Positions 4,601 to 47,885 of a DNA stretch of 64,000 nt are shown in pieces. Made by a program: the position numbers and the translations under genes. Source of the DNA: Pavona decussata (taxonomy: Eukaryota); the NCBI GenBank assembly GCA_977016875.1, contig CDRNST010000013.1, positions 1,860,001 to 1,924,000 on the forward strand. The letters are read 5' to 3'. The notes under the pieces are model-generated. The model was given only the letters and a program-made list of their open reading frames with translations, did not search any database and was not told where the DNA came from. Position 1 is the stretch's first letter, and each line of letters starts with the position of its first letter.

Positions 4601-7600
4601 GTAATTTTTTTCTCATACCATAATAATAACTATTTTAGGTGTATACAGGGCCCCTCAGGATGACAGCCCCGTAGCTGATTGGGCCACCCTGTCTAAATAA
4701 ATAATAATACTTACTTACTTACTAAAGAAGAAAGAAAACCTACAAAGGGCTTTAACGAAAACACCTTAACACAGTGCGGCATTTGTTGTTCAACATCACC
4801 ATATTTAAACATGCAGTGTCGATTAAACCGTGCTATGAATGAAGCGCTGGATATTTTTGTCTCACCTGGTATTTTGACGCACTTTTCACCACGTTTGAAA
4901 GGATTTCCGGTATATCCCTTAGCACACCTAGAACGTCGCAAGATTTCAAAAACGTTAACGAACAAGTACTGATAAAAACAGTGAAGACGATGATGTTCCT
5001 TTTCAAAAGGCATCTTTATTTTAAGTTCAAGAGCATTAAAACAATGAATAAGAATTGATAGGTAGATAATTGGGCGCTATTGTCTGGGTTGAAAGTCATA
5101 TTTTTGTTCCAAACGCTTCAACCTTTTTTCTAAGGTGTAGCCATACAGCCATTCAGTGATTCCAAAAAAACGGATTACGCGAGAAACAGACATTTTTTCT
5201 GTCAGTTTATACTTTAAAAGCTGTCGTTTTATACTTAATAACTTACAAGGGAACATTAAAGAAACAACATTACCATCCACTTTTTAAAGCGAAATTCAGA
5301 TGAGGACTTGAAAGGGGTTTGGACATTTTCAGTGCTTAACGTTGGGATCAACACAGGATTCAAACCATAAAGAATACAACAATAACAGAAAACAAACGAA
5401 CAAAAATATTAAATCCGTTTATTTTCAGTTTTTTGATCGTAGAAAAGTGCCATTTAAAAGGTAAAAAAGTGCTGTTTTTAAGGAAAAAATCTCACTAGTA
5501 ATCTCTCCAAACACCGAACCAAGGAAAACCCATACAAGACTAGAGATACGGTTTGTTTGGAGTTTCTCTACCTTTCGCAGTTCCTCCCAGTATAACCGGT
5601 TTGACAAGCTGTACACGTTGGTCTACCGTCCGCCTCAAGCTTACAAAGCCGACTGAACCTAGCAATTAAAAGAAAAAAAATCAGTTTTAGTGAACAAACG
5701 CAATCCACTCTACCCATTTAAACTTTTCCGTTCTAGAATTAATCTTCACTTACCCTAATGTGGTTCAGACATTGAGATTGTGAAATGAATCCTAAGCTGC
5801 GCGAAATGCAGGGTCTAAAGCAGTTTTATTCTATCATATAACACACACTTATCTTCGTATATATCTCTCGTTGGTGACTACAAAACATTTTTACTTTACA
5901 TAATAAAAATTGTCATGGCCCCTTGTGAATCCCAACTATTTTCAGTTTTCATAACCTCCGATCTTCTGTCGAATGTATGGTTCCTAGAACGCTTTCCGCC
6001 AAAATACAGTCAGCAAACGTTGACCACGGGCGCATGTACAAGTGAAAACGTCCAAGACGGCGGCATTGAAAGCTTATTTTTAAACTTTGAGTCTGTTTAC
6101 GAGATCGTTAGGCGCAACAATTTAACCGAGAGCTCGCAAGTTCTTCTTACAGCTGATACTGTTTATCATGCTCTACCTCGTGGTGGTTCTAAGCCTTCGA
6201 CTCCGTGGAAGAAACCCTAAAGTGCGACCATTGTAATGAAAGCTACTGGGCAGAAAGCGGTTCCTGTGGAACTGTTTCTCATGCAAACCAAAGTGGATCT
6301 ACAGTTTGAGTCTGTGGATGAAAACCATAAGTGTGACCATTCAAATCAAAGCTACTGAGAAGTGCTTTCCTGTGGTGCTGATTATTATGCTGTTTATTAC
6401 GCTGAGGCCAAAATGGAGCAGCTGTGGCACAAGAAAAGGGAACGACAAAGAGTAAGAGCATCTTTCGTACCCTCGCTACCAACAGCGTACATATGCAGAA
6501 ATTCTGACAGAGACTGCCACTCAAGAAATGGACTCTACAGTCACAGTCGACGCTGCCCCAATACAGTGAACTCACAGTTCTGGCGCAATCCATTGTCTTT
6601 GGAGACAGAAGGAGACAACTATAACTAACTGTAACAAGGTAATTCTAACTTTTGCGTCGGATGACGAGATTCTAAAGTATGACCAAGTTAATTTGTATTT
6701 TGATAATACTTTTTAAAACTTTTGGTTTGCCAAAGTTCACTCTCAGTCGAGCACTCTGAACAAGCAAGATGACGCTGTGTTGTTGGCGTCTACGCAAGGT
6801 TTCACATCGCATGGTTACTGGCAGTGGGTTGTAATTGCCAGTATTCATTGTTACACTGGATCGAGAGAGACAGTGTTGGTTAAAGGTTGTTGTCTAAAGA
6901 GGCTTCAAATCAGAGACCAACCTCAAATCACCAGCCTTCCGACTAAAAAATCTGATGCGCTAACCCGGGTACGATACACTGTGGTACTTACTGATTGGAA
7001 GCAACTGTGAGAGGACAGGGACATGGTTGGCAATCTTTGGACGTTCCTTTCGTGGCGTCACCGTAGAAACCAACTGAACATCTATCACACTGGGGACCTG
7101 TGGTGAAATGATCGCATCTCTGAAAAAAACAAAACAAAATAACAACAACAACAAAAAAAACAAAACAAAACAAAAAAAAACAACAAAAAAACAAAAACAA
7201 AACAAAACAAAAACAAATTGCAACGTTAACAGAAGTTAAAAAAGAGGAAATTCAAGGGGAATGACTTTGGATATCGAAACGAAAGGTAATACCGCATTTT
7301 TTTTAATTATTACCTTGGACCATAGACTCTCTTTCAAAGAAACTTGTCAATAAAAAAACCTCCTATAATTAAGGCTTGCCTCGAACATACCTCTATTTTT
7401 GGACAAGGTAGAGAAAAAATTGACACTCCAAATTTCCTAGTGAAAAATACGTAAAAATACACAACAGCAGTTCAATTCTGCACACATCAACGTTACGCCT
7501 CAACTGGACAGATGTGGACGTTTTACTTTGCGAATAATTTGTTTTCACCCTCCCACACTCCGGGCCGAAAATAAGGGTCAAATCAGGTTTTACACTCCCA

Positions 7601-10600: not shown

Positions 10601-13600
10601 CGCTAGATGACCCAGGAAGCGCGGGCAAGAAAAACGGCGGACTTCTTAAACCAACCAGCTGGAAATAAACCACTTTTACTGAATTTCTTTGTTGAGTAGA
10701 TGCTTTGAATCTCAGACTGAAATAGTCTACAACAAAGCGATCCTAACCTGGCTCGTGTTGTTGTTGTGCTGTACGTCGCTCTTATTAAGATGCTATCCAC
10801 AGCAGACAACACTGTCATCACGTTATCTCTGGTCACGCGACTGCCATCCGGGAACCTCAGCCAGTTCTGGTGTGATAGAATACGTTTCAGACACGGTAAA
10901 AGCAATATACAAACCACAAAAGAAGACGAAATTTTTAAAAGTGGAAGGTTGGTTGATGTACCGAAAAACTAAGTGTTTCTTGGTGTTGAGGAAACCATTG
11001 TCGGTTAGGTTTGTTCTGTGGTGTGGGCATTGTTTATTACCTCTTGAGTATTTTGTTTTACGTCATTTAGTGATCGTACCATCCGCAACATCAAGACACC
11101 GCCGAAAATTAGAAAAAATTCAAGAACTATGTCACACCCCAAACTAAACAAAAAATGCAAGGGGTACTGTATTAATACAGGGATCTATTTACAATGATTC
11201 TTCATCCTCACGCTTTAAGGGTCTTTTACGCTGATTTACAGTAATTTCGTTTTAAATCCAAAACAATGGTTTCAGACTGTACAATTACTTTTCTACTAAC
11301 CTCAGATAGTTTAAGGCCGTATAACCCTTTTTTCCCTCCTTGGAGGGGTCTTCCACTACGATACTTGAGAATAAGCCCTCTTCCCTGCAGAGCAAGATTA
11401 AAAATTCAAATATAATCATAATACACAACGTCGTTTTGTAGGTGTGGAGGATGCAGAATGTTATAAGGAATGTATTGTTACTTTTTCCCGTCCAGCCGCT
11501 CATAGTATCTAAAGCAACGTTGAAATCAAAATTCTTCCATGTTGTGTTTGCTTCCAGGAAGCAAAGTTTTACCGTTCGCACACATCTCGATTTTAATGTA
11601 ATGGGACTTGCCTTAAACTACGCTTTTCAAAGTATGCGACAAGATTCAACGGAATGTACCGCTCAATGCTGCTCCTTTAGGATTGAAGCGCACCACTTAA
11701 ATGGCGCGGTACTGAGAGTACTGGCTTGGAATGTAATTTTGGTTGGCAGGTTTGAAACAAAGCTAACAAGGTTGCACTGTTGACTTTTCTTGTGTGTGAT
11801 TTGCGTGTTTAGTGTTACGGCTAGAGCCGAAATTGTAAATGACTGTGGTGCACATCACAAACGTTGGATGGTGCTTTGCTTCAGTTATGAAAATGAAGAA
11901 CATGAAGCCAATTCGTGAAGGCGTTTGAGATATACATTGTAGTTCGTAGCTCTGAGAGTGATCGTAGAAAACGCCTCGCTTCCTTTTACAGTGGTTAGGT
12001 TACGTCTAAGATAAGAGTACAGAAAAGTGGTCATCCAGGCCTTTTGGCAGTTTAAGTACCTTCTTCAATTCAGCAAAATTCCTGAGAACCAGGACGACAA
12101 GTTCGTGTATAACGTCTTGATAACAAGTTTATTAAATATCGTTTGATAATTCTAAGACCAATCTCGAACTGAAACTTAATTTCAGTGGTAAAAGAATCCT
12201 TTTTATCCTCAAGGAACATTAAATGGCCAGATCTTGATTCCTTCATACCACCAACTTGATTTGAAGCAGAGGGCACGTCTCAGATCGATGAAAAAACTAG
12301 CACTTGGTATTAATTTTATGCGGTACATTTTCAAATGGGTTTTTACAAATGGTTCACTTACCATGATTTGCACGTCCGTCTCCCTTGTCATTTCTCCACC
12401 TGGATTCATGTCATGTGACACAGTGTACCGCATGATACCGTCATAGCTCGTAATCTAATAAGGCGACAAAGAAAAAAGGCTGTTCGTTCGGAGATTATCA
12501 ATAAAGTACATGTGGATTAAGGTAAACCAAATAGGCGTCTCCGAGACATTCGAGAGTGTTTATAAATTTTGTATGCTGTTAAGGGTATCAAGGACAATGA
12601 ACTAATAATTTAATGATTCACTTTGCAGACCACTAAATATTCACTAAAGGGTCAATAAGAAGATATTTTCTCAATCTTCGATCAATTTACGTAAAGAAAA
12701 TGACAAGAAATAGGTGCATTAAATGAGCCCTATGGTGGCTATAAATTATGTTATGACTCCTCCTTTTAATGTACATTGCACCCCAAACCAGACAAAAGTC
12801 CGCCAGAAAGTGCATAGTGTGCTCATCCTGGCTTGGAGTCAAGGCAACTGGCTTACAGTTTCCTAATCACAAGGGCCCTTCACTGAGTCATCAATGAGGG
12901 GAAATTTAAGCACACAAGTTAACAAAGCTCGCTGGTAATGTGCAGTGGGTTGAAGTCACACGAAAACTTACCATGTCTCCTCTGAATTCCTCGCCCAAGA
13001 ACCAGTAATACGTTCCAGCGGGTTTCTTGTCAAACTTGTCATAGACAAAATGTTGTGGGTCACCCTGAACCTGCAAGTCGGTGCTAATAATAAAGTCACG
13101 TGACAGATCGGCGAGTCGCAAGAAGTCGGGGCCTTCAAGCAAGGCAAAACGAAGACGAATCTGAAACATAAAATAAAACTTACAACAACAACAACAACTT
13201 ATTTAATATTCATATTTTTATTTTAATTACTGGAATACGCAGTCCGCATATAGCAGAGCTAATGAGTAACTGAATGAGTTACTTGAGAGCCAAGCAGAGA
13301 AAGTCAAGAACTGTCAACCTTAAGAGAGTGGAGAACGTCAGAGAAAGCTAATCACCGTTATTTTGTTGGAACATGGTCAGTATAATCGTGTCACACCTTT
13401 CGTCTCTTCAACAATAATGGTTCATTTTTGTATAAAATACCCTACCAGTTTTGTAAAACTATTAATCAGTGTTTTTACTCAAGTACACTCAATGATAGCC
13501 TGGATAGGAATGGTTTTCGCCTTCCAAAATGTTGACCCAGTTTTAAAGTTTCTCCCTTGCTTCTTCTTGAAAAATAGCTGATTATGGCCAATTCTCCTCA

Positions 13601-36500: not shown

Positions 36501-39500
36501 CCGCTGGTGCGGAAGATGTTTCTGGTGTTGCTGTTGTTTTAATTTGTTCCTCAGTCGACACACCCGCTGCTGTGGAAGATGTTTCTGGTGTTACTGTTGT
36601 TTTAAATTGTTGCTCAGTCGACACATCCGCTGGTGTGGAAGATGTTTCAGGTAGTGCTGTTGTTTTAACTTGTTGCTCAGTCGACACATCCGCAGCTGGG
36701 GAAGGGATTTCAGGTGTTTCTGTTGTTTCAAGTTGTTCCTCAGTTGAAACATCCACTGCTGTGGCAGATGGTTCTGATGGTGCTGTTGTGTAGACTGAGG
36801 TTGGCGAAAAGGTGGTTGTTTGATCTTGTTCCCCAGTCACCAAAGCCTCCATTTTTGTGATTGTAGCATCTGGTGTAACTGTCAGTGTTTTGAAGGTAGC
36901 TTTTTCAAACCTGTAAGGTGAAAGAGTCTCTGCGGTGGTTTTAGTCTTTTTTTCAATGACACTGATTGTTGTCAATGGAGTAGTTTCATTTGGATCTATG
37001 GTAGTCAGTCCAGATCCATCATTTGCCTGCTCGTCATCGTTACTATCAATGAAGTAGTCTGTTTCAAAGCCCCTAGACAATAAAATATCTCTTGGCACTC
37101 GAGCATGTCTTGATTCATTTCCTGGATCATTTTCCGTCAATGCATCTCCATCAGAGTACTTGATGGAGTAACGAAGTTTTCCACCATAACTGGTTAGCTA
37201 CGAAGAGCAAAAGAAACAAAAAAATAAGTTTAAACGCGTTGCGTAGTTTATTTATAGTGATAGTTAAGACAGATTTTCTCTCATCATATACAAACACTTT
37301 CTCCTAAGATCAGAACCATATGTTTTTGTACGAGTTAATCAAAGGCTAAAAGCTTCCAAGCTTGTAAATAACGCTTCTGCAGACAGCATGCACGCATTAT
37401 TTGGCTATGTCTACGCTATATCTTTGGCCAGCACAGCTCTTTACGCTACGCCTGCTAATGAACTTAGCGGTTCACATTACGCTTGGCATGGCATCTGATA
37501 AACACGAAAAAAGTGTTATACTTGCTAAATGATGCAGTAGTTCCCTGGTAGCAGAGTCCCTTCTTCATTAATTTTATCCCGGTCAAAAATAACACAAAAG
37601 GAATACCACACTGGGGACGTGACGCAACGTTCGGGCATAAATATCGTAAATAAATTCACAGTTTCTTCTGCACTTGAGACTATAAAAAAAATCCGCAATG
37701 TCTCTGGAACAGAAAAGTTAAAACTACTTGCACCCAGATCTCTAAAACGTATTCAAACAGGTCATCAAAAAATCGAATATTACAAACTGTTGATTATCTT
37801 GCAATCTCCCCATTCATTAATAAGCTAAATTTGCTCAGCTACCTATTAAGCATATTTTATTAATTTAAATTTATATATTAAACTCCTGTTCGCTTGTGCA
37901 CGCTGTCAACTATTACTTTAATAGGTGCTGCTGCATAAAATGTAATCGTGTTCTCTCTCTCTTTTTATTGATGTTTGACTCTCCCCCCCCCGCCTCGACA
38001 AGTCCTCTTCCAGTTGAAGGTACCCGTATTTTACCTTTGGAAATATCAATAAATGTCTTGTTGTTTGTCCTACCCAACAAAGTTTTCATAACTATTGCTA
38101 AGCAAGAGATCCTTGTACTTGCCTTTTTTCCTAAAAACCCCTTCGGTAGAGCAAAGTAAAGCGGTGTTTCTTTAGACACGTTGTGAGCCACTAACTCATT
38201 GTTCGTTTGGTCAACAGCGTATTTAACTCCAGAGACTTTATCTCCACTGACATCTACTAAGTACACGACTGGATCATGGGGCGACGTTTTGAGCTCTAGT
38301 TTGAGCTGTGATAAATATGTAATTAAGAAAGAAAAAGATATGTTAGATTAAAGATACCAAAGCTAAAAAAGACCTGAGTGGTGTAATAAATGGATAATGG
38401 CCAAAGAGGAGTCCCTTCTCCAGGTTGTACCTTACAATACGACGATGGAATATTAAAGGTTGGCTACCTAAGATTGGCATTATTAAAATTTCATATACGT
38501 TGCCGATAAGGGACACTAGTTCCAAACAAGTGGCAAGAAAGTCTGCATCTACTCCTTCCACATCCTTAAACCGAGAAAGAAGGTTGACCTTTCGTTTACC
38601 ACACAAGGAATATTTGGGTTAAAAGAACCAGAAAAAATCTACGTCTTGCTTCTGACATTTATTTTGAATATAGCTTTGGAAAATCTCCTGCGCGATATTT
38701 TGATACCAGCTTGAACTAAGTAAAACAAAGTTAAGGAATTCGGACCAAGTCAAATATAATTTGTAAAACTGTTGTTCAATGACATCGAATAAGTAAAGTT
38801 ATAATCGAACTTCACCGATCGCGCATGCGTTCAAATTACACAATGTTCTCCACTCACCCTGTCTCGGTACACGTTGGCATGACTGCAATTGTGTGAACGC
38901 CCCGTGCAAAAACACGACACACACTTCCCATGAGAGGCAGAAGTTTGCTCTCCTGGACCACAGAATCCATCTTAAAAGAGAAGGAAACTTTTGATTATGG
39001 ACTTGGCAATGAAGGCCTCGTTGTGTCTTTTGAAAACAAAAATACGTTTTACGTTTTGTCCACAAATGAGACACCGATTACGTATTGATTAAGTTTTGTG
39101 TCTGGCCGCCAGTGCGCCTCTCCGGTATCAACAAAGCGAACGTTTTCTAATCATTTGTACCAAGCATAGTTTGAACAGTTAACCAAATTGAACAGCTTGC
39201 TGTATATAAAGTCCCTTATGGATTTACCTTCGCTAGAAAGCCATTTAGTATACATTATTTAGATTCGATGTATATAAAGTCCCTTATGGATTTACCTTCG
39301 CTAGAAAGCCATTTAGTATATATTATTTAGATTAGATGTGGTGTGAACATAGCTTAAGTTTTAAACTGATGAGACAGAAAATGAACTCGTAACGTAGCAT
39401 GACTTACCACATCCAATCTCATCGCTCCAGTCTCCACAGTCATTTTCTCCGTCACAGCGCCATTCCTGTCTTGCACACGTCCCATTCTTGCAACGAAATC

Positions 39501-42500
39501 TACTGTCGTCACATGACTCCTGTGCGGCTGCAACTTAGTAACGTTATGCACACGTTAACAGTTTTGCATGAGAGAAAGAATTACTGCAAATGCAAGAATA
39601 CAGGTTTGATAAATCTCACACTCACTTACGTTTTATAATGTCGAGAAAGAAAACTGGTCATTTAATAATAGATGAATTTGTCGGTCAGTGATGCATATAT
39701 ATTTTCTTTTACCGAGTATGTTTGTGTTACTGACTGAAAAAAAAAATCTTGAATTTATCTCAAATATAGCCATTTTAGTGAAGAAAAAACTATTTACGTT
39801 TTCACTGCTGTTTTCTGCCACGAAAAAGAATAATTAACCTTCTAATTTGCCGGGGTTTACATTGATTATGCGACACTAATTTGAAAAGCAACTATCGCCG
39901 AATAGTTACCTGATTCGAGAGGCGAACATTTCCCCTCCACACGACACTTCTGAGCAAGTCTTTGAATTACCATCTCTGGAACACTGCAGTAGTAAATATA
40001 AAACTCGTCTATGAATCCGTTTACTTTCAGCGCTAACGCCTCGTTTATTGAATATTTACCAATGGTGGTCAACTCGCCCCATGCTATATCCAGCGACCCT
40101 CCGTTTGACGAACCCCTCAATGTTTCCACTCCATTAAGAAATACCGCGGAACGCCCAGTATGAGCGTCATATTGGACGACGAGGTGTGTCCAGAGGTTTT
40201 CTGGAATGATTGGTGATGCGCTTAGCAGCTCGAATGTAGCGAGTGATGGGCGGGTTCCAGTGTATCGCCATGCGATGTGTCCTTCGAAAAGCTCAAAGCG
40301 GAGTGCACCCGCCTCTCCTTGTAAAACAAGAATCGGCTGAATGCCGTATCTGGATTGCAGTTTGACCCAAACGGCAATGGTTATTGCACTGGTTACCGTT
40401 TGACGAGTTGCACTCTTGAATTGCACATCTCCTGCATTCAGGTCTGCATAGTTGCCACATGGATAATCTTCGCTGCTCAACGACGGGGAATGGGCACGGC
40501 GTCTGTGCAATTCCTGCTGGTCAAATCCAAGGTGCAATTCGGGTGTACAACAGCCTGTCAAAAAACAAACCAGCATCTATGACAGATGACCATCACGCTG
40601 GACATGGATTATGGGGCGATGTACATGGAATGACAGAGGCGTGAACTAAGGTACTCGCTAAGATTATCAGGCCGGATATGACTGACAGATCCTTCGAGGG
40701 TCGTATCTAAATTACCTATTTTAAAACAATGGGGTTGAAATTCACTAGATAAACGGCGATTTGTTATCATGTGTGTGCAGCTGAATTGGACAAAACTTAA
40801 AAGAAACGAGTCCCTCTGCCTTTTTTGGAAAGAGGGGTGGCGAAAAACGTATTGGAGCTATATGTGTGTCCTTGAAGAGTATCAATTTTCAGCCATTTAG
40901 GGTTAAGATAGTCATTTTTTTGCCATTTTGGCTTACATTGAAAGGTTTTTTGAGGTGACATCTGAGACAATGGTATATGGACAACGATTCTGGTTTGGTT
41001 TGGTTAGTCAGTTTCCGCGTTTGGGCGTGGTACACCCCAAAACCTAAAATGGTGTGGGGGTATGCTCCTCCCTTCAAACGTAACTTTAAATGACCTGTGG
41101 AAAGACAAAACTGAGGAACCTGAATGAAGTCTCTCCCAATCGCTTACCTAGTTTGTCTGAGAAACAGTGCAATCAAACTTAGACTTATCCAAACGGATAG
41201 TTGAGGAAAAAGCTACACACGAGCCATCAGTGAAATGTGAAATTAGTGAAAATACGTGAAACGCAAGCCGTCTTTTGCGTGGTGATTCTTTTTCTCTGTT
41301 TGTTGTCAGGTTTAGCCTGTTGCTATGTCTCTTTTCTTCCAGTTAGAAAAAGCAGGTTTGACTCAATACAAGAGAAATATAACTTTTGATGCTAAAAAAA
41401 GGTAAACATACACATTCGCGGCGATGGTCTCCCTCAACTGGATCTACCATTCTCAACAGGTCCTTTAAATTGTCTTGTTCTCGTATTTTTTTGCATCAAA
41501 CGTGGACTGGGCAGAGGGAAAAAAATGAAACTGTGCTATTTTCCTCTCGCACCATTTTTCCTATTGTTTACCAGTTTTTTCTCTGTTTAGCTCCGGTGGA
41601 AAGAAGAGAAAATTCCTACACGGCAGCGAAATTGAACCTTGCGAAGGTAAACTGGGGCCCCTTGTGTCAGTTATGAACATGTACATAATTCCGTTCACAG
41701 CAAAACCATGACTGCAGACAAGTGAGAGTAAACGGTATCTATACCTGATCACTACAAACTGATCCTCACGACAGAGGAAAGACAGATGCAGAGGAATAAA
41801 CTAATATAACAATTAACACATTTTATTCGAAATATCGGGCACAAAAAATATCATAATTTTCATTTTATTTTGTTCCTCTTGCGTCCGCTTTTCATCTGCC
41901 GTTGGGATCAGTTCTCAATCCCAGCCTGGTTTGTTGTTTTGACCTTCGCTGCATGAAGATGAAAGAACAGGCGCAATAAGAATAGCGCGTGCGCGGAACG
42001 GGGTGGGGTGTGATCATGTAGTCTATCGTTCAAGCCAATTTTGCGATATATCCCCCAATTGCTGCCTGCATGCCTGGCAGGTGCTCTCTCCTCCACGACA
42101 CGCCAACAAAAGTAATTGGAAGAACTCCTATATTGAGAATAAACCCATCCATCCTCCAACCAATGGTTTTCAATACATAGCTACCCTTATGGCCGATGAA
42201 CGAAGCGAGTTGCGGGGGGGGGGGGGGGGGGGGAAGGGGGACGAATTTCTCTGTTACAAGAAAAACTCCCGCGACATCGTGGAAAGTAGCCTGCGATTTC
42301 CGACCTTCGTAGGTACAGATTGTAGTTTTTTCCTATCCATTTCCGTCTCCTAAACAAGAGAGCTGGTTTCTACCTTTCTGTTGCGCTATAAATCCTTTAA
42401 AATTCTTCGCATTTCACCTGACTTTTCTTCGGGCTTTGCGGTTAAATCTCCCGCTGTTTTGGCTCATTTTCCAGTGATAATAAAATCAAGTACTTTGGAC

Positions 42501-44722
42501 GTTTGTTTTTATAAGATACCGGGCGCGACCGGAAAACCACACATGTTTGTCACATTATCTACAATCGATCAAACCATGTGTAATGTGGTGACATCAATCA
42601 AAGAAAGAACAAAAGTTTGTTTCTGCAGTTTGTCAAATTGTACAAATTTATTACAGCGCCTGACTAGAATCCACCTTTGTTATACCCTTTGTGGTGGGGT
42701 GGGGTTGGGGATACACTTGCATAAGAAACAGATTTACTGATTTACTGTATGTTATAAAACGCATTGACAAAAATGCCTGGCCAAATAATTTGGAACAGAA
42801 CATAATAGGCTATTTTATGTTCCCGAAGATTGGCTACCAAGACCACAAAGAGAGGTTTAAATATTTTTTCTTCTGAAAAAATAGGGTTCGTAACGGAATT
42901 TAGGGTGGGTTTGTGATGTTTGGAGTTACAAGCCCTCAGACCAGGCGTGATATTTTGTTTCCTAATCCCATAACCCAGCTCTGTTCCCTATTTGTCACCA
43001 ATTGGTAATTAAAACATATCTTACATATTATTTCTCTACATATTTACTGTCCATATATTTATATAAGATGTCTGCTTTTACATATTCTACAGTTATAGTT
43101 TTTCTTTATTTATCCTTATTTTAAATTGGGTTAAATAGTATTTACGTTTGTTTCCTTTTTATAGTCACCCAGTGAAAGTTAGTTTGTCTAACCGAAATAC
43201 CCGGCAATGTTATTAAAATACTAGCTGTTCGATCAACCTCGCATCTTTTAAGTCGTTTTAATTAAAACACACTCTATTAGTATTACGGTTTAAAAACTGC
43301 ACTTTTTTTTGGGGGGGGGGGGGGGGGAGGAGGGGGTGGAGGGGTTGGGCAACCATCTTATAAGGAATTAGTTCGCAGCATCAAATGTTTGTATTTTTGT
43401 CCAGGCTTTTGTGTCCTCACAGAAAAAAAAATAATAATAAAAAAATAAAATTTTGCAAAGATTTGGCGAGAATCTGCATTTCCCGTCTAAGTTTCACCCC
43501 CGGAAATAAATTCGACGCGATGAATTTATTATTCCTAACATAACCCATTTCATGCTGTCAACATCACGCAGCTTACCTGGTGGTCCACTGTCCGCCAGGG
43601 ATCTTCGATCTCTGATCGCTGACATGACTGAATTGACGCCATGAGAGCGTTGAACGACTTTGGTTTCCTCTGGCAAATTCTTCACTTCGTATAAATTATC
43701 AGTTTCCTAGATAAAAAGAAATCCGCACTTAAGCATTTGGAGAATGCGTTGATTGCAAAATTCAAAGGGGGAAATATGTGGAAATATTTTGCTACTCCAT
43801 GGCAAATAATTTTATTCGAGCAGCGCTAGGAAAAAGAAAGCCGGACTTGAATTATCGTGAGGTCGGCATTGCTATTGGTATGCAGCGGTTTGGCGGAATG
43901 CATAACCTTAATGAATCGGTATGATAAAGTTTGGATAATATTTCCCGTGGTTTACTGACATATCAAATTTATTTATTCCGAAAACCTCCAGCAAGTAAAT
44001 TATCAAGGAACGTACTTGATCTTTAACCCTTGAAATCACGATATTTACTACATACTATTTTGAGCTACCTGCCGAAACTTTGTTTTGAAAAATAGGAAAA
44101 CAAAATCACTTCCTGCCAGAAAGCTAACTCAGAAATCTGCAATCAAGTCCAATCTGTCATAAGATCACCATCATCTTTGCCATAGAAGAGCTTCTTATGG
44201 ATTTAATGCAATGTTTACATATTTACTTAAGCTGAATAAAATTAAAAGAATGTTTACTTATAGACTTTTCATGAGTGAAATTAAAATAATGTTGGTTTGG
44301 CACTTCCATTTGATGCGGAAAGCGTGCAGCGAGTGCAGCTTTCTGTGCGTGTTTCCCCCGCTGTGACCTGAATGATAGCTCTGACATGTCACGGACAAAT
44401 GAAGGACGACCAGTTAGGTGTGTGCAGCCTTACAGAAAATTAGATGAAAACAAAGCTAAGGAAATCGGGAAATTTTCTAAGCGTACGTACGACGTCAGAA
44501 TCGCGGTCAAAATGCTGGTTTTGTTTTACATTCTAACAATTTTAGTAATATAAGTATATTTTCTACAGGAAATATACTTTCCTCAATTTCATTATGACAA
44601 CAATTTGACTCAATTCACAGTTGTAGAAAAAAGCTTACCTGTAAAGGTCTGCTGATAACTAGCTGTAACGAAAGCAGGAAACCAAATGCACATGGCAATC
44701 TAGTGAAACAAAAAGGCCACAT
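776..44722 (-). CDS. HSPG2: Perlecan/HSPG2-like basement-membrane proteoglycan core protein gene (31 coding exons in window, 3' end probably off the left edge; orthology unproven)
   Basis: Manual splicing gives one continuous frame with compatible phases: 44639-44722, 43577-43706, 39910-40554, 39408-39527, 38858-38970, 38123-38305, 31989-37197, 31460-31542, 31094-31180, 29526-29653, 29008-29119, 28216-28320, 27987-28114, 27053-27139, 25962-26017, 25280-25356, 14115-14255, 12972-13160, 12362-12454, 11301-11384, 10748-10866, 9101-9212, 7920-8033, 6992-7119, 5572-5658, 4866-4927, 3925-4194, 3129-3404, 2386-2658, 1904-2176, 776-1045. The order LDLa, LE/L4 modules, tandem Ig is the perlecan domain II-III-IV order. 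Confidence 0.85.
1440..1715. mobile_element. Penelope-like terminal repeat relic (inverted halves) with hammerhead-like core
   Basis: Minus strand CTGACGG-AGAGCTAACGCTC-GAAACG at about 1508-1534; plus strand ccaccgacgcagcaccaca...ctttagaa at about 1675-1705. Confidence 0.55.
1557..1642 (+). repeat. (AAAT)n microsatellite
   Basis: Direct reading. Confidence 0.95.
1904..2176 (-). CDS. Perlecan-like exon, Ig I-set domain 4
   Basis: [15 protein letters not shown]...[11 protein letters not shown]. Confidence 0.92.
2386..2658 (-). CDS. Perlecan-like exon, Ig I-set domain 3
   Basis: [16 protein letters not shown]...[10 protein letters not shown]. Confidence 0.92.
3129..3404 (-). CDS. Perlecan-like exon, Ig I-set domain 2 (not in ORF track)
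   Basis: [38 protein letters not shown]...[24 protein letters not shown]; phase 1-1. Confidence 0.9.
3925..4194 (-). CDS. Perlecan-like exon, Ig I-set domain 1
   Basis: FYC...IAWSR...[11 protein letters not shown]; phase 1-1. Confidence 0.92.
4270..4375 (+). repeat. (ATC)/(ATT) low-complexity microsatellite
   Basis: Direct reading. Confidence 0.85.
4866..4927 (-). CDS. Perlecan-like exon, laminin-EGF end
   Basis: [20 protein letters not shown]. Confidence 0.88.
5572..5658 (-). CDS. Perlecan-like exon, laminin-EGF
   Basis: [28 protein letters not shown]. Confidence 0.9.
6155..6400 (+). repeat. Diverged tandem repeat, about 110-bp unit (gtgtgaccattcaaatgaaagctactgag family)
   Basis: About two copies here; related pieces near 6630-6690, 8780-8990 (minus strand) and 53455-53620. 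Confidence 0.6.
6992..7119 (-). CDS. Perlecan-like exon, laminin-EGF
   Basis: [42 protein letters not shown]. Confidence 0.92.
7123..7217 (+). repeat. (AAAAC)n / A-rich microsatellite forming the polypyrimidine tract of an acceptor
   Basis: Direct reading. Confidence 0.9.
7920..8033 (-). CDS. Perlecan-like exon, laminin-EGF
   Basis: [38 protein letters not shown]. Confidence 0.9.
8379..8545. mobile_element. MITE with 9-bp TSD and TAG...CTA ends (Academ- or MULE-like)
   Basis: TAGACTT...AAGTCTA termini; TSD TAAATTCTC (8370-8378, 8546-8554); left 38 bp tandemly duplicated. Confidence 0.8.
9101..9212 (-). CDS. Perlecan-like exon, L4 end and LE
   Basis: [37 protein letters not shown]. Confidence 0.9.
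10748..10866 (-). CDS. Perlecan-like exon, second L4
   Basis: [33 protein letters not shown]. Confidence 0.9.
11301..11384 (-). CDS. Perlecan-like exon, second L4
   Basis: [28 protein letters not shown]; this frame differs from the ORF track but fits phase 0-0. Confidence 0.82.
12362..12454 (-). CDS. Perlecan-like exon, second L4
   Basis: [31 protein letters not shown]. Confidence 0.9.
12972..13160 (-). CDS. Perlecan-like exon, second L4
   Basis: IRLRFALL...[15 protein letters not shown]. Confidence 0.9.
14115..14255 (-). CDS. Perlecan-like exon, laminin-EGF before second L4
   Basis: [47 protein letters not shown]. Confidence 0.92.
18393..18606. mobile_element. MITE nested in the Harbinger element
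   Basis: TIRs GAGGGTCG(T/C)ACA; 7-bp TSD TATTCAA (18386-18392, 18607-18613). Confidence 0.8.
19452..19666 (-). pseudogene. HARBI1-like transposase first-exon remnant
   Basis: [22 protein letters not shown]...LSRDT, then in a shifted frame [11 protein letters not shown]|gtaaat; resembles the HARBI1 N-terminal RYR...TxRSxxLS motif. Confidence 0.55.
20545..20721. other. Assembly gap (177 N)
   Basis: Run of N. Confidence 1.
25280..25356 (-). CDS. Perlecan-like exon, laminin-EGF
   Basis: [25 protein letters not shown]; phase 1 to 0. Confidence 0.88.
25962..26017 (-). CDS. Perlecan-like exon, laminin-EGF
   Basis: [18 protein letters not shown]; phase 2 to 1. Confidence 0.85.
26511..26623. mobile_element. 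Small TA-flanked MITE (Tc1/mariner-like)
   Basis: TA|CAGCTGTTTCGACAAAGGTTG ... CAACCTTTGAGAAAACAGCTG|TA. Confidence 0.65.
26680..26970. repeat. Decayed fold-back element with one TTAA end
   Basis: Imperfect inverted arms (ttgacac...accttaaaatt...gagagtcttgtct versus agacaagactctc...aatttttaaggt...gtgtcaa); right end ggagccTTAA. Confidence 0.45.
27053..27139 (-). CDS. Perlecan-like exon, laminin-EGF
   Basis: [28 protein letters not shown], strongly resembling perlecan domain III. Confidence 0.92.
27987..28114 (-). CDS. Perlecan-like exon, laminin-EGF
   Basis: [42 protein letters not shown]. Confidence 0.9.
28216..28320 (-). CDS. Perlecan-like exon, laminin-EGF
   Basis: [35 protein letters not shown]. 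Confidence 0.9.
29008..29119 (-). CDS. Perlecan-like exon, L4 end and LE
   Basis: [37 protein letters not shown]. Confidence 0.9.
29526..29653 (-). CDS. Perlecan-like exon, first L4
   Basis: [32 protein letters not shown] matches the L4 W...(T/S)RxxFMxVL...IxxRxxY motif. Confidence 0.9.
30946..31058. repeat. Hairpin MITE-like repeat, copy 1
   Basis: aatatcgcctgattttagc...gctgagtatcaggcgatatt; same family as 52022-52135. Confidence 0.7.
31094..31180 (-). CDS. Perlecan-like exon, first L4
   Basis: [29 protein letters not shown]; tag/gtttgt; phase 0-0. Confidence 0.82.
31460..31542 (-). CDS. Perlecan-like exon, end of mucin insert and return to L4
   Basis: [28 protein letters not shown]; phase 1 to 0. 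Confidence 0.8.
31989..37197 (-). CDS. Giant 5,209-nt exon: L4 motif followed by acidic Thr/Ser/Glu-rich mucin-like repeat region
   Basis: ttcgtag|[17 protein letters not shown] continues into the 1718-aa ORF of the track; ends TPTS G|gttag (phase 1). Confidence 0.9.
32560..36770 (-). repeat. Coding minisatellite, about 63-nt (21-aa) unit, roughly 65-70 copies
   Basis: Unit about ADVSTEEQ(V/I)(Q/E)TTA(T/A/I)PETSSTA; recurring cctcagtcgacacatccgctgctgtggaagatgtttc on the + strand. Confidence 0.95.
38123..38305 (-). CDS. Perlecan-like exon, first L4 (laminin B) domain, N-terminal part
   Basis: Ends [14 protein letters not shown], matching the L4 Y-W/F-xLPxxFLG motif; donor is AAG|gcaagt (GC). 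Confidence 0.85.
38858..38970 (-). CDS. Perlecan-like exon, laminin-EGF start before first L4
   Basis: [38 protein letters not shown] contains the CFCxG motif that precedes L4. Confidence 0.88.
39201..39338 (+). repeat. Local 68-bp tandem duplication
   Basis: tgtatataaagtcccttatggatttaccttcgctagaaagccatttagtata... starts at 39201 and again at 39269. Confidence 0.9.
39408..39527 (-). CDS. Perlecan-like exon, LDL-receptor class A domain
   Basis: [36 protein letters not shown]: 6 Cys and the DCxDxSDE motif; cag/gtaag. Confidence 0.92.
39910..40554 (-). CDS. Perlecan-like exon 3, LamG/pentraxin (concanavalin-A-like) domain
   Basis: Motifs [23 protein letters not shown] and [10 protein letters not shown] are typical of Laminin_G_3/pentraxin folds; 645 nt, phase 1-1. 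Confidence 0.85.
43577..43706 (-). CDS. Perlecan-like exon 2, putative propeptide
   Basis: ttatctag|[43 protein letters not shown](G)|gtaagc; phase 0 to 1 fits both neighbours. Confidence 0.8.
44639..44722 (-). CDS. Perlecan-like first coding exon, signal peptide
   Basis: [28 protein letters not shown] is hydrophobic; donor CAG|gtaagc, phase 0. Confidence 0.75.
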
Positions 44723-44879
44723 CACTGCAATACAGACCCACACAGAGGAATGCGCGAGAATACGCCTCGAGCTTGCACAGCAGCGGTCAAGAAACCGTAT
44801 ACAGTATTCAAGATTCTTCTGCTTAACCAGTTACAGTCGATATCTCGACGATGTTATCTTTAACCATGAAAGATCACTG

Positions 44880-46569: not shown

Positions 46570-47885
46570 TAATTTAATAATAAACCTAATTTATATTGCA
46601 CTAAAATCATAAAATATTCTAAAGCGCTTTACAGCACATAATTAAAATCAATATAACGAAGCGGACTAATGTGAAAATTATCACAACAAACTATATGCTG
46701 ACTTAAAAAGGTATGTCTTTAACTTTGATTTTAAAATAGAAACCAGTTGGGAATGGATCGTATATCGAAGGAGTTTGTTCCAAAGTAATGGTCGAGAATG
46801 CGCAAAGGCCCGATCACCAAAGGTCTTGTGAATAGTTTTCGGCACAAAAAGAAGTCCCTGGTCACAACAGAGTAGGCTATACGCTGAAATGGAATGGGGT
46901 AACAGCAGTTCTTTAATGTATTGTGGAGCTTGATCGTTAACAGTTTTATAGACTAAAAGCAGGAGTTTAAACTGAACACGATAATTAACTGGAAGCCAAT
47001 GTAGGCGGAATAAGGCAGACGAGATGTGATCAAATTTAGGTATACCAAAAATTAGTCGAGCAGCTGCGTTTAGCACTTTCTGAAGATATTTGATATTTAG
47101 GGATGCCAAAGAAAAGGGAGTTGCAGTAGTCGTAATGTGAAGTTACTAATGCATGAACAATAATTTTCGTCCACTCAGGATTGAGGAATTTTCTAATTTG
47201 GCGGATTTTATACAACCCAGCGAAGGCCTTCATGGCTACATGTCTTGGCAACGTGAATCGACATGGACATGTTAGAATCGAACCAGGAACCCAAATTACG
47301 AACACTGTGGAGAGGCTGAACGGTAGAGTCACCGACAAAGATGGAATGAATTGATATTTTTGATAGTTGTTGACGAGAACCAACTATTAGAATTTCAGTT
47401 TTCGAATCATTTATCATCAGGCGATTATGAAGTAGCCACGCACGGACATCAGAAACACAGGACTCAATAGCAGCTAAGACAAGGTCTTTTGAAGAACCGC
47501 TATCGGGTCTGAACGAGAGATAGAGCTGCCTGTCATCAGCATACCCATGATCATGAGCTGAGGGAAGGAGGTTAGCAATTACGTGATAGAGTCGGGAGAC
47601 GTATAATACGAACAAAACAGGACCCATACAGCCGCCTTGTGGGACACCGCAATGTAATTGAAATTCACCAGAAAAACTATCATTTATGAGAACCCGTTGC
47701 TTTCTGTTCGCCAGATAACATGCGAACCAGGTAAGGGCTGAACCAATGATTCGAAAATCATTTTCAAGTACACTAAGGAGAATTTGATGATCAATTGTGT
47801 CAAAAGCCGCGCTCAAATCGAGTTACACAAGAGGCGTAATTTCCTGATTGTCCATAGACATGAGAATATCACTTTTACTTGTTTA
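46570..47885 (-). mobile_element. 5'-truncated non-LTR retrotransposon (L2/CR1 group), decayed reverse transcriptase
   Basis: LDLSAAFDTIDH, GVPQG, YADD, LHWLPV, FGDRAF motifs spread over three frames with stops and frameshifts; short 3' UTR ending in an ATT-rich tail. Confidence 0.92.

Follow-up and report, generated by a model that had tools for sequence, protein, structure and literature searches.

A Laminin_G_3 head and a reduced domain II at the 5′ end of a probable perlecan gene in the coral Pavona decussata

The locus and its exon chain

The 64-kb window analyzed here (the whole stretch of 64,000 nucleotides, positions 1,860,001 to 1,924,000 of contig CDRNST010000013.1, hereafter C13) comes from the coral Pavona decussata and carries on its minus strand the 5′ part of a gene for a modular matrix protein; coordinates are those of the window unless prefixed by C13 or by the name of another locus. 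The seven exons (E1 to E7) listed in Table 1 lead from a start codon and a signal-peptide-like sequence through a short linker, a complete Laminin_G_3 domain (the head), and a single LDLa module to the laminin-type EGF and L4 (laminin B) sequences with which domain III of a perlecan begins. We hold it probable, at roughly 0.8, that these exons form the genuine 5′ end of a perlecan (HSPG2-type) gene of which the coral has only one copy, and that the gene has an old Laminin_G_3 head and a domain II that has been reduced. A preliminary description, made from the sequence alone, had traced the same exon chain but took the lectin-like head for a lineage-specific gain on a perlecan or perlecan paralogue, and an RDRR motif in the linker for the end of a propeptide.

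Every one of introns 1-5 starts with GT and ends with AG, and these ends, the reading of the sequence, and spliced contigs from three studies bear out the coordinates and phases that were first proposed. The spliced model was used for checking the reading frame only, and homology searches were run exon by exon. E3 matches Laminin_G_3 (PF13385) with E 3.9e-16 and 60 bits against a curated cut-off of 27.6, and E4 matches Ldl_recept_a (PF00057) with E 8.9e-12, so the early domain calls, LamG and a single LDLa, stand; E1 and E2 have no match in Pfam. E1 combines Arg8, a hydrophobic core (Kyte-Doolittle mean up to 2.25), and an SRPLQ end, a pattern that is kept together with the start Met in three Met-aligned orthologues (L021, L023, and L016; the relatives are introduced below). 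Upstream of the ATG the first in-frame stop lies at 44833, with no in-frame ATG in between. At the other end of the chain, the LDLa exon joins half of a laminin-EGF exon and then L4, and the direct join to domain III is therefore correct.

The donor that follows exon 6 (38117-38123, AAG/GCAAGT) is of the GC type, and five relatives have GT at the same place; this downstream junction of exon 6 lies outside the stretch covered by transcript contigs.

Table 1. Features of the 5′ end of the gene in window coordinates
Feature	Position	Strand	Basis
5′ untranslated region, minimum extent	44723..44765	-	unspliced run of one X1 contig to 44765
Exon 1 (E1), 28 codons from the start ATG, signal-peptide-like, phase 0 at the end	44639..44722	-	reading and joint 44639/43706
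Exon 2 (E2), 43-codon linker, 130 nt, ends in phase 1	43577..43706	-	reading and joints on both sides
RDRR motif (R-x-R-R) in exon 2	43602..43613	-	sequence reading
Exon 3 (E3), complete Laminin_G_3 domain, 645 nt, phase 1-1	39910..40554	-	Pfam, fold model, joints
Exon 4 (E4), single LDLa module, 120 nt, phase 1-1	39408..39527	-	Pfam and joints
Exon 5 (E5), first half of laminin-type EGF (CVSCFCxGRSxxC), opens domain III, 113 nt, phase 1 to 0	38858..38970	-	
Exon 6 (E6), start of first L4 (laminin B) domain	38123..38305	-	reading and loose transcript ends from 38858
Exon 7 (E7), L4 motif, mucin-like array next	from 37197	-	sequence reading

Transcript evidence

Logan contigs of four sequencing runs (X1, X2, X3, and X7) were aligned to 38800-44799. 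Three of these runs, X1, X2, and X7, belong to different studies that carry the species label of the window, and their contigs contain the spliced joints 44639/43706 (X1 and X7), 43577/40554, 39910/39527 or 39910/39533, and 39408/38970 (X1, X2, and X7), along with loose ends at 38858 (all three runs) that match the first bases of E6, starting at 38305. One X1 contig comprises E3-E2-E1 and runs on unspliced to 44765, and one X7 contig comprises E3-E4-E5 and continues into E6. Since five canonical introns have been removed, X1, X2, and X7 are RNA. Both junctions that flank the head exon and that the preliminary description had singled out, 43577/40554 and 39910/39527, are thus present in spliced contigs, and no contig contains an extra exon, either in the intron of about 3 kb at 40555-43576 or elsewhere in 38800-44799.

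The acceptor of E4 is duplicated in tandem, with two sites 6 nt apart and both in frame: 39533 is used in X1 and X2, adding two codons, and 39527 in X7. This reflects either alternative splicing or an allele-specific splice choice. In the coral metatranscriptome X3 the gene was not found; only short intronic stretches matched (43204-43235 and 39701-39740), in contigs that then become unrelated, and these stretches are probably dispersed repeats transcribed elsewhere.

It might be supposed that the head exons belong to a neighboring or nested gene and were connected to perlecan wrongly, by gene prediction or contig assembly, given that the whole N-terminus is found in no single contig. We regard this as very improbable: contigs from three studies bridge E1-E2-E3, E3-E4, and E3-E4-E5, the last of these extending into E6, the intron ends are canonical throughout, and the same exon order recurs in eight other loci from independent assemblies.

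No hidden SEA, LDLa, or Ig exons

A gene with one LDLa and no SEA could be a gene whose remaining modules were overlooked. A motif scan of all introns and of 5 kb upstream found no LDLa-like segment. Twelve LDLa modules, taken from the gene and from its relatives, were combined into a custom profile, which found a single LDLa in the six frames of the window, with E 1.7e-21 and a next best E of 0.55. Runs of N occur in the window near 20.5 kb and also in L016. The SEA family has no match across the whole 2.16-Mb contig C13. The Ig of domain II is absent, the joint 39408/38970 in the transcript contigs taking LDLa straight to the laminin-EGF exon. The unusual layout that had been proposed, with neither SEA nor further LDLa nor domain II Ig, is accordingly upheld: the LamG exon does not sit on a separate transcript, and the intron at 40555-43576 hides no missed exons.

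Upstream open frames were also screened with Pfam. The largest, at 47211-47822 on the minus strand and about 2.5 kb upstream of the gene start, matches a reverse transcriptase (RVT_1, E 2.8e-15); it is a retroelement remnant and lies outside the gene. An RVT_1 frame also occurs in L021, within the intron that precedes its head exon.

Probable perlecan identity of the gene

Downstream of the exons in Table 1, on the same strand of the window, lie a Laminin_B domain at 10606-10917 (E 2.9e-8), a laminin EGF at 6991-7200, and I-set/Ig_3 matches at three exons (E 1e-13 to 1e-17). The genome scan places Laminin_B matches at C13:1870741 and 1889546, in addition to the L4 motif at 37197; at least 11 Ig core motifs follow on the same strand from C13:1842291 to 1864000, and Laminin_G_2 matches occur on the minus strand at C13:1838787-1839155 and 1840312-1840665, with Laminin_G_1 at E 8e-22. 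The gene therefore presents, in the order characteristic of perlecan, LDLa (one copy), L4 within laminin-type EGF (domain III), a tandem Ig run (domain IV), and C-terminal LamG (domain V), an order that makes it most likely a perlecan (HSPG2-type) orthologue. It lacks the SEA module of domain I with its heparan-sulfate attachment sites and the domain II Ig that follows LDLa; the only Ser-Gly of the linker (ADSGPP) is not conserved in relatives.

These departures, together with an L4 domain split by a mucin array, could instead signify a perlecan-like paralogue, or a separate proteoglycan family, that exists beside a canonical perlecan elsewhere in the genome; in Nematostella, for its part, the annotation lists three perlecan-type models side by side (NV2.14904, 14905, and 14907; PMC12549020). 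The genome speaks against such a companion. Laminin_B matches are confined to five contigs, and the L4 loci on two of them, C67 and C161, are runs of laminin EGF without LDLa or Ig motifs and are laminin-chain-like. A third, C318, has both L4 and Laminin_G_2 matches, all on one strand, and from the genome scan it would be a laminin alpha chain. Among the loci compared, L4 occurs together with an Ig run and C-terminal LamG at C13 only, where the LDLa is found as well. We therefore consider a paralogue improbable and the gene most likely the single perlecan orthologue of this genome, as judged from a screen from which C18 was left out and in which C318 was seen in the genome scan only. Of the two identities originally offered, perlecan is thus retained and paralogue is not.

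The head in relatives

When 1.84 billion representatives were searched exhaustively with phmmer, and a word search was added, about 30 relatives of the head came to light, 30-98% identical and all single-exon open frames of 179-301 residues, which share the start GCC(T)PELHLGFD and the end GKCAPxxPG. There was no named full-length protein among the matches of the phmmer and word searches, and a feature search of the ESM Atlas returned generic Laminin_G_3 clusters only. Eight loci with flanking DNA (L014, L015, L016, L019, L020, L021, L022, and L023) were compared exon by exon. In L021, L014, L016 (a Tara coral metagenome scaffold), and L015, whose heads are 85, 58, 52, and 44% identical to that of P. 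decussata, the head is followed by one LDLa, the half EGF, and L4; L022 (69%) has one LDLa and the half EGF, its L4 exon being unmatched in the available DNA; L023 (55%) has no LDLa; L019 (31%) has three LDLa, an I-set Ig (E 1.8e-19), EGF, and L4; and L020 (30%) has three LDLa, after which its contig ends.

L021, L022, L014, and L016 also have signal and linker exons preceding the head, and exon 5 is 56-86% identical in seven relatives. The phase of the head acceptor is kept in 8/8 loci and that of the donor in the 7/7 in which it is reached (the L020 match ends before the donor), so that the symmetrical 1-1 phase described for the P. decussata exon is not only confirmed but conserved. In L023 (10666-11196) a gapless 520-nt intron separates the head from the laminin-EGF exon, with phase 1 at both its donor and its acceptor. 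The ends of this intron are homologous to L014, the LDLa-bearing middle is gone, and its removal joins the head to the EGF in frame. Where three LDLa are present, the second is the one that most resembles the single LDLa retained in the coral group.

In a maximum-likelihood tree, a branch supported at 100/98 separates all 25 head sequences from five Laminin_G_3 paralogues of the same genome and from domains of EGF-rich and F5/8C-CUB proteins; the root of this tree is set at the midpoint only. Relatives with as little as 30% identity still have the head, which in the most distant loci stands ahead of three LDLa modules and, in L019, of an Ig as well, and for this reason it is likely to be old; the three LDLa and Ig of L019 represent a canonical domain II behind a Laminin_G_3 head. 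By this comparison of loci, the head predates the lineage, and the changes specific to the lineage are losses, namely those of two LDLa modules and the Ig. A recent, lineage-specific gain of a lectin-like head, to which the symmetrical 1-1 exon, typical of shuffled modules, would lend itself, is thus improbable: the same exon is present in about 30 relatives that form one group in the tree.

Two further observations concern the most distant loci. In L019 (18952-19431) the L4 exon with LTSYGGKIRY continues into a sequence rich in Ser, Thr, and Pro, and the insertion in L4 may thus be as old as the head. In L020 (11811-14296) long poly-Asp, poly-Ser, poly-Ala, and poly-Val open frames lie between the head and the first LDLa; these are probably intronic microsatellites that happen to be open in several frames. 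Neither L019 nor L020 has a Pfam domain in the open frames that precede its head.

The RDRR motif

The proposed gain of the head came with a second element, the removal of an N-terminal propeptide by a furin-type convertase at RDRR, and we judge it together with that gain to be improbable. The motif, followed by Ser, does fit R-x-[KR]-R, and the closest relative, L021, has RDQR at the same position, but L022 has EDQN, L014 and L023 have RDEN, and L016 has WERR, and one such motif is expected by chance in several thousand residues (a rough estimate from residue frequencies, not computed). The exon 2 orthologues in these five loci differ in length and sequence, as befits a poorly conserved linker. 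With the motif lost or degraded in all five of these relatives, a propeptide is unsupported; RDRR appears to be an unconserved feature of a fast-evolving linker rather than a general processing site, although cleavage limited to this species or genus is conceivable.

The fold of the head

An AlphaFold model of the head, built on an alignment of 28 homologues (A1), is a beta-sandwich with a mean pLDDT of 85.9 and a pTM of 0.85, uncertain only at a loop formed by residues 12-28; a single-sequence model with a pLDDT of 32 was discarded in its favor. PTX3 pentraxin domains rank first in a Foldseek search with this model. VIA-align, a structure search independent of Foldseek, gives PTX3 a Z of 18.5 (rmsd 2.8 A over 173 residues) and bacterial CBM40 and arabinanase modules, almost as high, a Z of about 17, followed by short pentraxins (SAP, 16.1), the PAPP-A head (15.8), the NC4 domain of collagen IX (14.4), classical LG/LNS domains (about 13), the TSP-1 N-domain (12.8), and human perlecan LG3 (12.6). 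The profile of A1 also reaches PTX3 by sequence, with E 1.3e-4. Yet Pfam Pentaxin (PF00354) does not match the head at E up to 1, and the pentraxin signature H-x-C-x-[ST]-W-x-[ST] is not in its sequence, the equivalent strand reading ITIAVWVKL. As modeled, the head is thus a member of Laminin_G_3 with a predicted ConA-like jelly roll, pentraxin-like in fold only and no pentraxin, and the original label "pentraxin/LamG-like" describes the fold fairly. A duplication of the gene's own C-terminal LG modules was considered as a source of the head and rejected, those modules being of another Pfam family and the Z for LG3 being 12.6 versus 18.5 for PTX3.

Six cysteines are conserved throughout the head group and would form three disulfides. 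The head is mildly acidic in nearly all orthologues, with a pI of about 5-6, and a heparin-binding role like that of TSPN domains was set aside for this reason. Because the conserved residues lie in the core of the fold, they do not point to a binding site. Since the nearest structural relatives of the head are pentraxins and sialic-acid-binding CBM40 modules, it may bind a glycan or a protein, and by this analogy the head could be a ligand-binding end piece of a basement-membrane proteoglycan that replaces domain I.

A basic motif in the low-confidence loop (residues 12-28; 40470-40500) is semi-conserved and reads HRRRAHS in P. decussata and RRAQS in the majority of its coral relatives; distant relatives have the usual Laminin_G_3 motif DDSGxDNNA at that position.

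Discussion

We posit that the protein enters the secretory pathway by way of a short signal peptide. Next come a variable linker and an N-terminal Laminin_G_3 domain of ConA fold, at the place that the SEA domain I occupies in vertebrates. Domain II consists of one LDLa without an Ig, spliced straight onto the laminin-EGF/L4 of domain III. The head is most likely an old module carried on a phase 1-1 exon, in a lineage that probably lost modules and did not gain the head.

Six points weigh against this interpretation or narrow it. (i) Exon 1 to domain III is not spanned by one contig, and connectivity is provided by a chain of overlapping contigs. (ii) Logan contigs are compatible with minor isoforms that skip the symmetrical exons. 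(iii) The RNA label of the runs is a guess, their RNA nature being evident only from the spliced form of the contigs. (iv) The screen for paralogues used crude motif patterns on three candidate loci. (v) The taxonomic depth of the head is gauged from sequence divergence and a midpoint-rooted tree. (vi) R-x-x-R survives in the linker of the closest relative.

A bolder extension would make the head the ancestral domain I of anthozoan, perhaps of cnidarian, perlecan, overlooked in the Nematostella model, and would have it take over the role of SEA and its heparan sulfate, with a dispensable domain II, as the stepwise disappearance of its modules, from three LDLa plus Ig to one LDLa and then to none, would suggest. 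We offer this proposal tentatively and consider it doubtful as a whole.

Perlecan is a core basement-membrane component in nearly all animals, and in vertebrates its N-terminus carries growth-factor-binding heparan sulfate. With the coral gene, the replacement and loss of modules in a matrix protein of great age can be put to the test in a concrete example, in which LDLa and Ig were shed stepwise, each on a symmetrical exon. The ligand of the head could explain how cnidarian perlecan is anchored or decorated.

Comparison with known systems

The vertebrate layout used for comparison is established knowledge, supplemented by one published account (PMC4398486). Like the coral gene, vertebrate perlecan (HSPG2), the core of a secreted basement-membrane proteoglycan, has LDLa, laminin-EGF/L4, tandem Ig, and C-terminal LamG in this order; it begins, however, with a SEA domain I bearing SGD heparan-sulfate sites, four LDLa, and an Ig, whereas the coral protein has Laminin_G_3, one LDLa, and no Ig, a contrast that the preliminary description drew correctly. 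SEA is also absent from the perlecans of Nematostella, fly, and worm (PMC4398486). The perl gene of Nematostella vectensis (Warren et al. 2015) encodes domains II-V, with homology to the LDL receptor and Ig in domain II, no SEA, and no O-glycosylation sites upstream of domain II (PMC4398486). It thus resembles the coral gene as a cnidarian perlecan that lacks SEA and has domains II to V in bilaterian order, but nothing is reported before domain II, where the coral has its Laminin_G_3 head. A 2025 Nematostella matrisome lists its perlecan-type models without domain detail (PMC12549020). In the literature that we searched, no cnidarian perlecan is described as having a LamG or pentraxin head; automated database annotations may show one.

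Outside the perlecans, pentraxin domains (PTX3, SAP/CRP, neuronal pentraxin, and the PTX-like domain of ADGRG4) are the best structural matches of the coral head, which differs from them in having neither the Pfam Pentaxin match nor the pentraxin signature. The TSPN/LamG-like heads of thrombospondins, collagens, and PAPP-A provide the parallel of a ConA-fold module at the N-terminus of a large modular matrix protein, yet they are structurally less similar to the coral head than pentraxins are, and TSPN binds heparin whereas the coral head is mildly acidic. Other cnidarian Laminin_G_3 modules (those of EGF-rich and F5/8C-CUB proteins and the paralogues in the same genome) belong to the same Pfam family, lie in single open frames, and are 26-40% identical to the head, but they lack its GCC start and its YYC...C...C cysteine pattern and fall across the 100/98 branch. 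Set beside these systems, the coral gene represents a refinement of a known family and not a new kind of system: a perlecan that keeps the family's order of modules from LDLa to C-terminal LamG and carries, in front of them, a Laminin_G_3 domain whose fold is closest to that of pentraxins.

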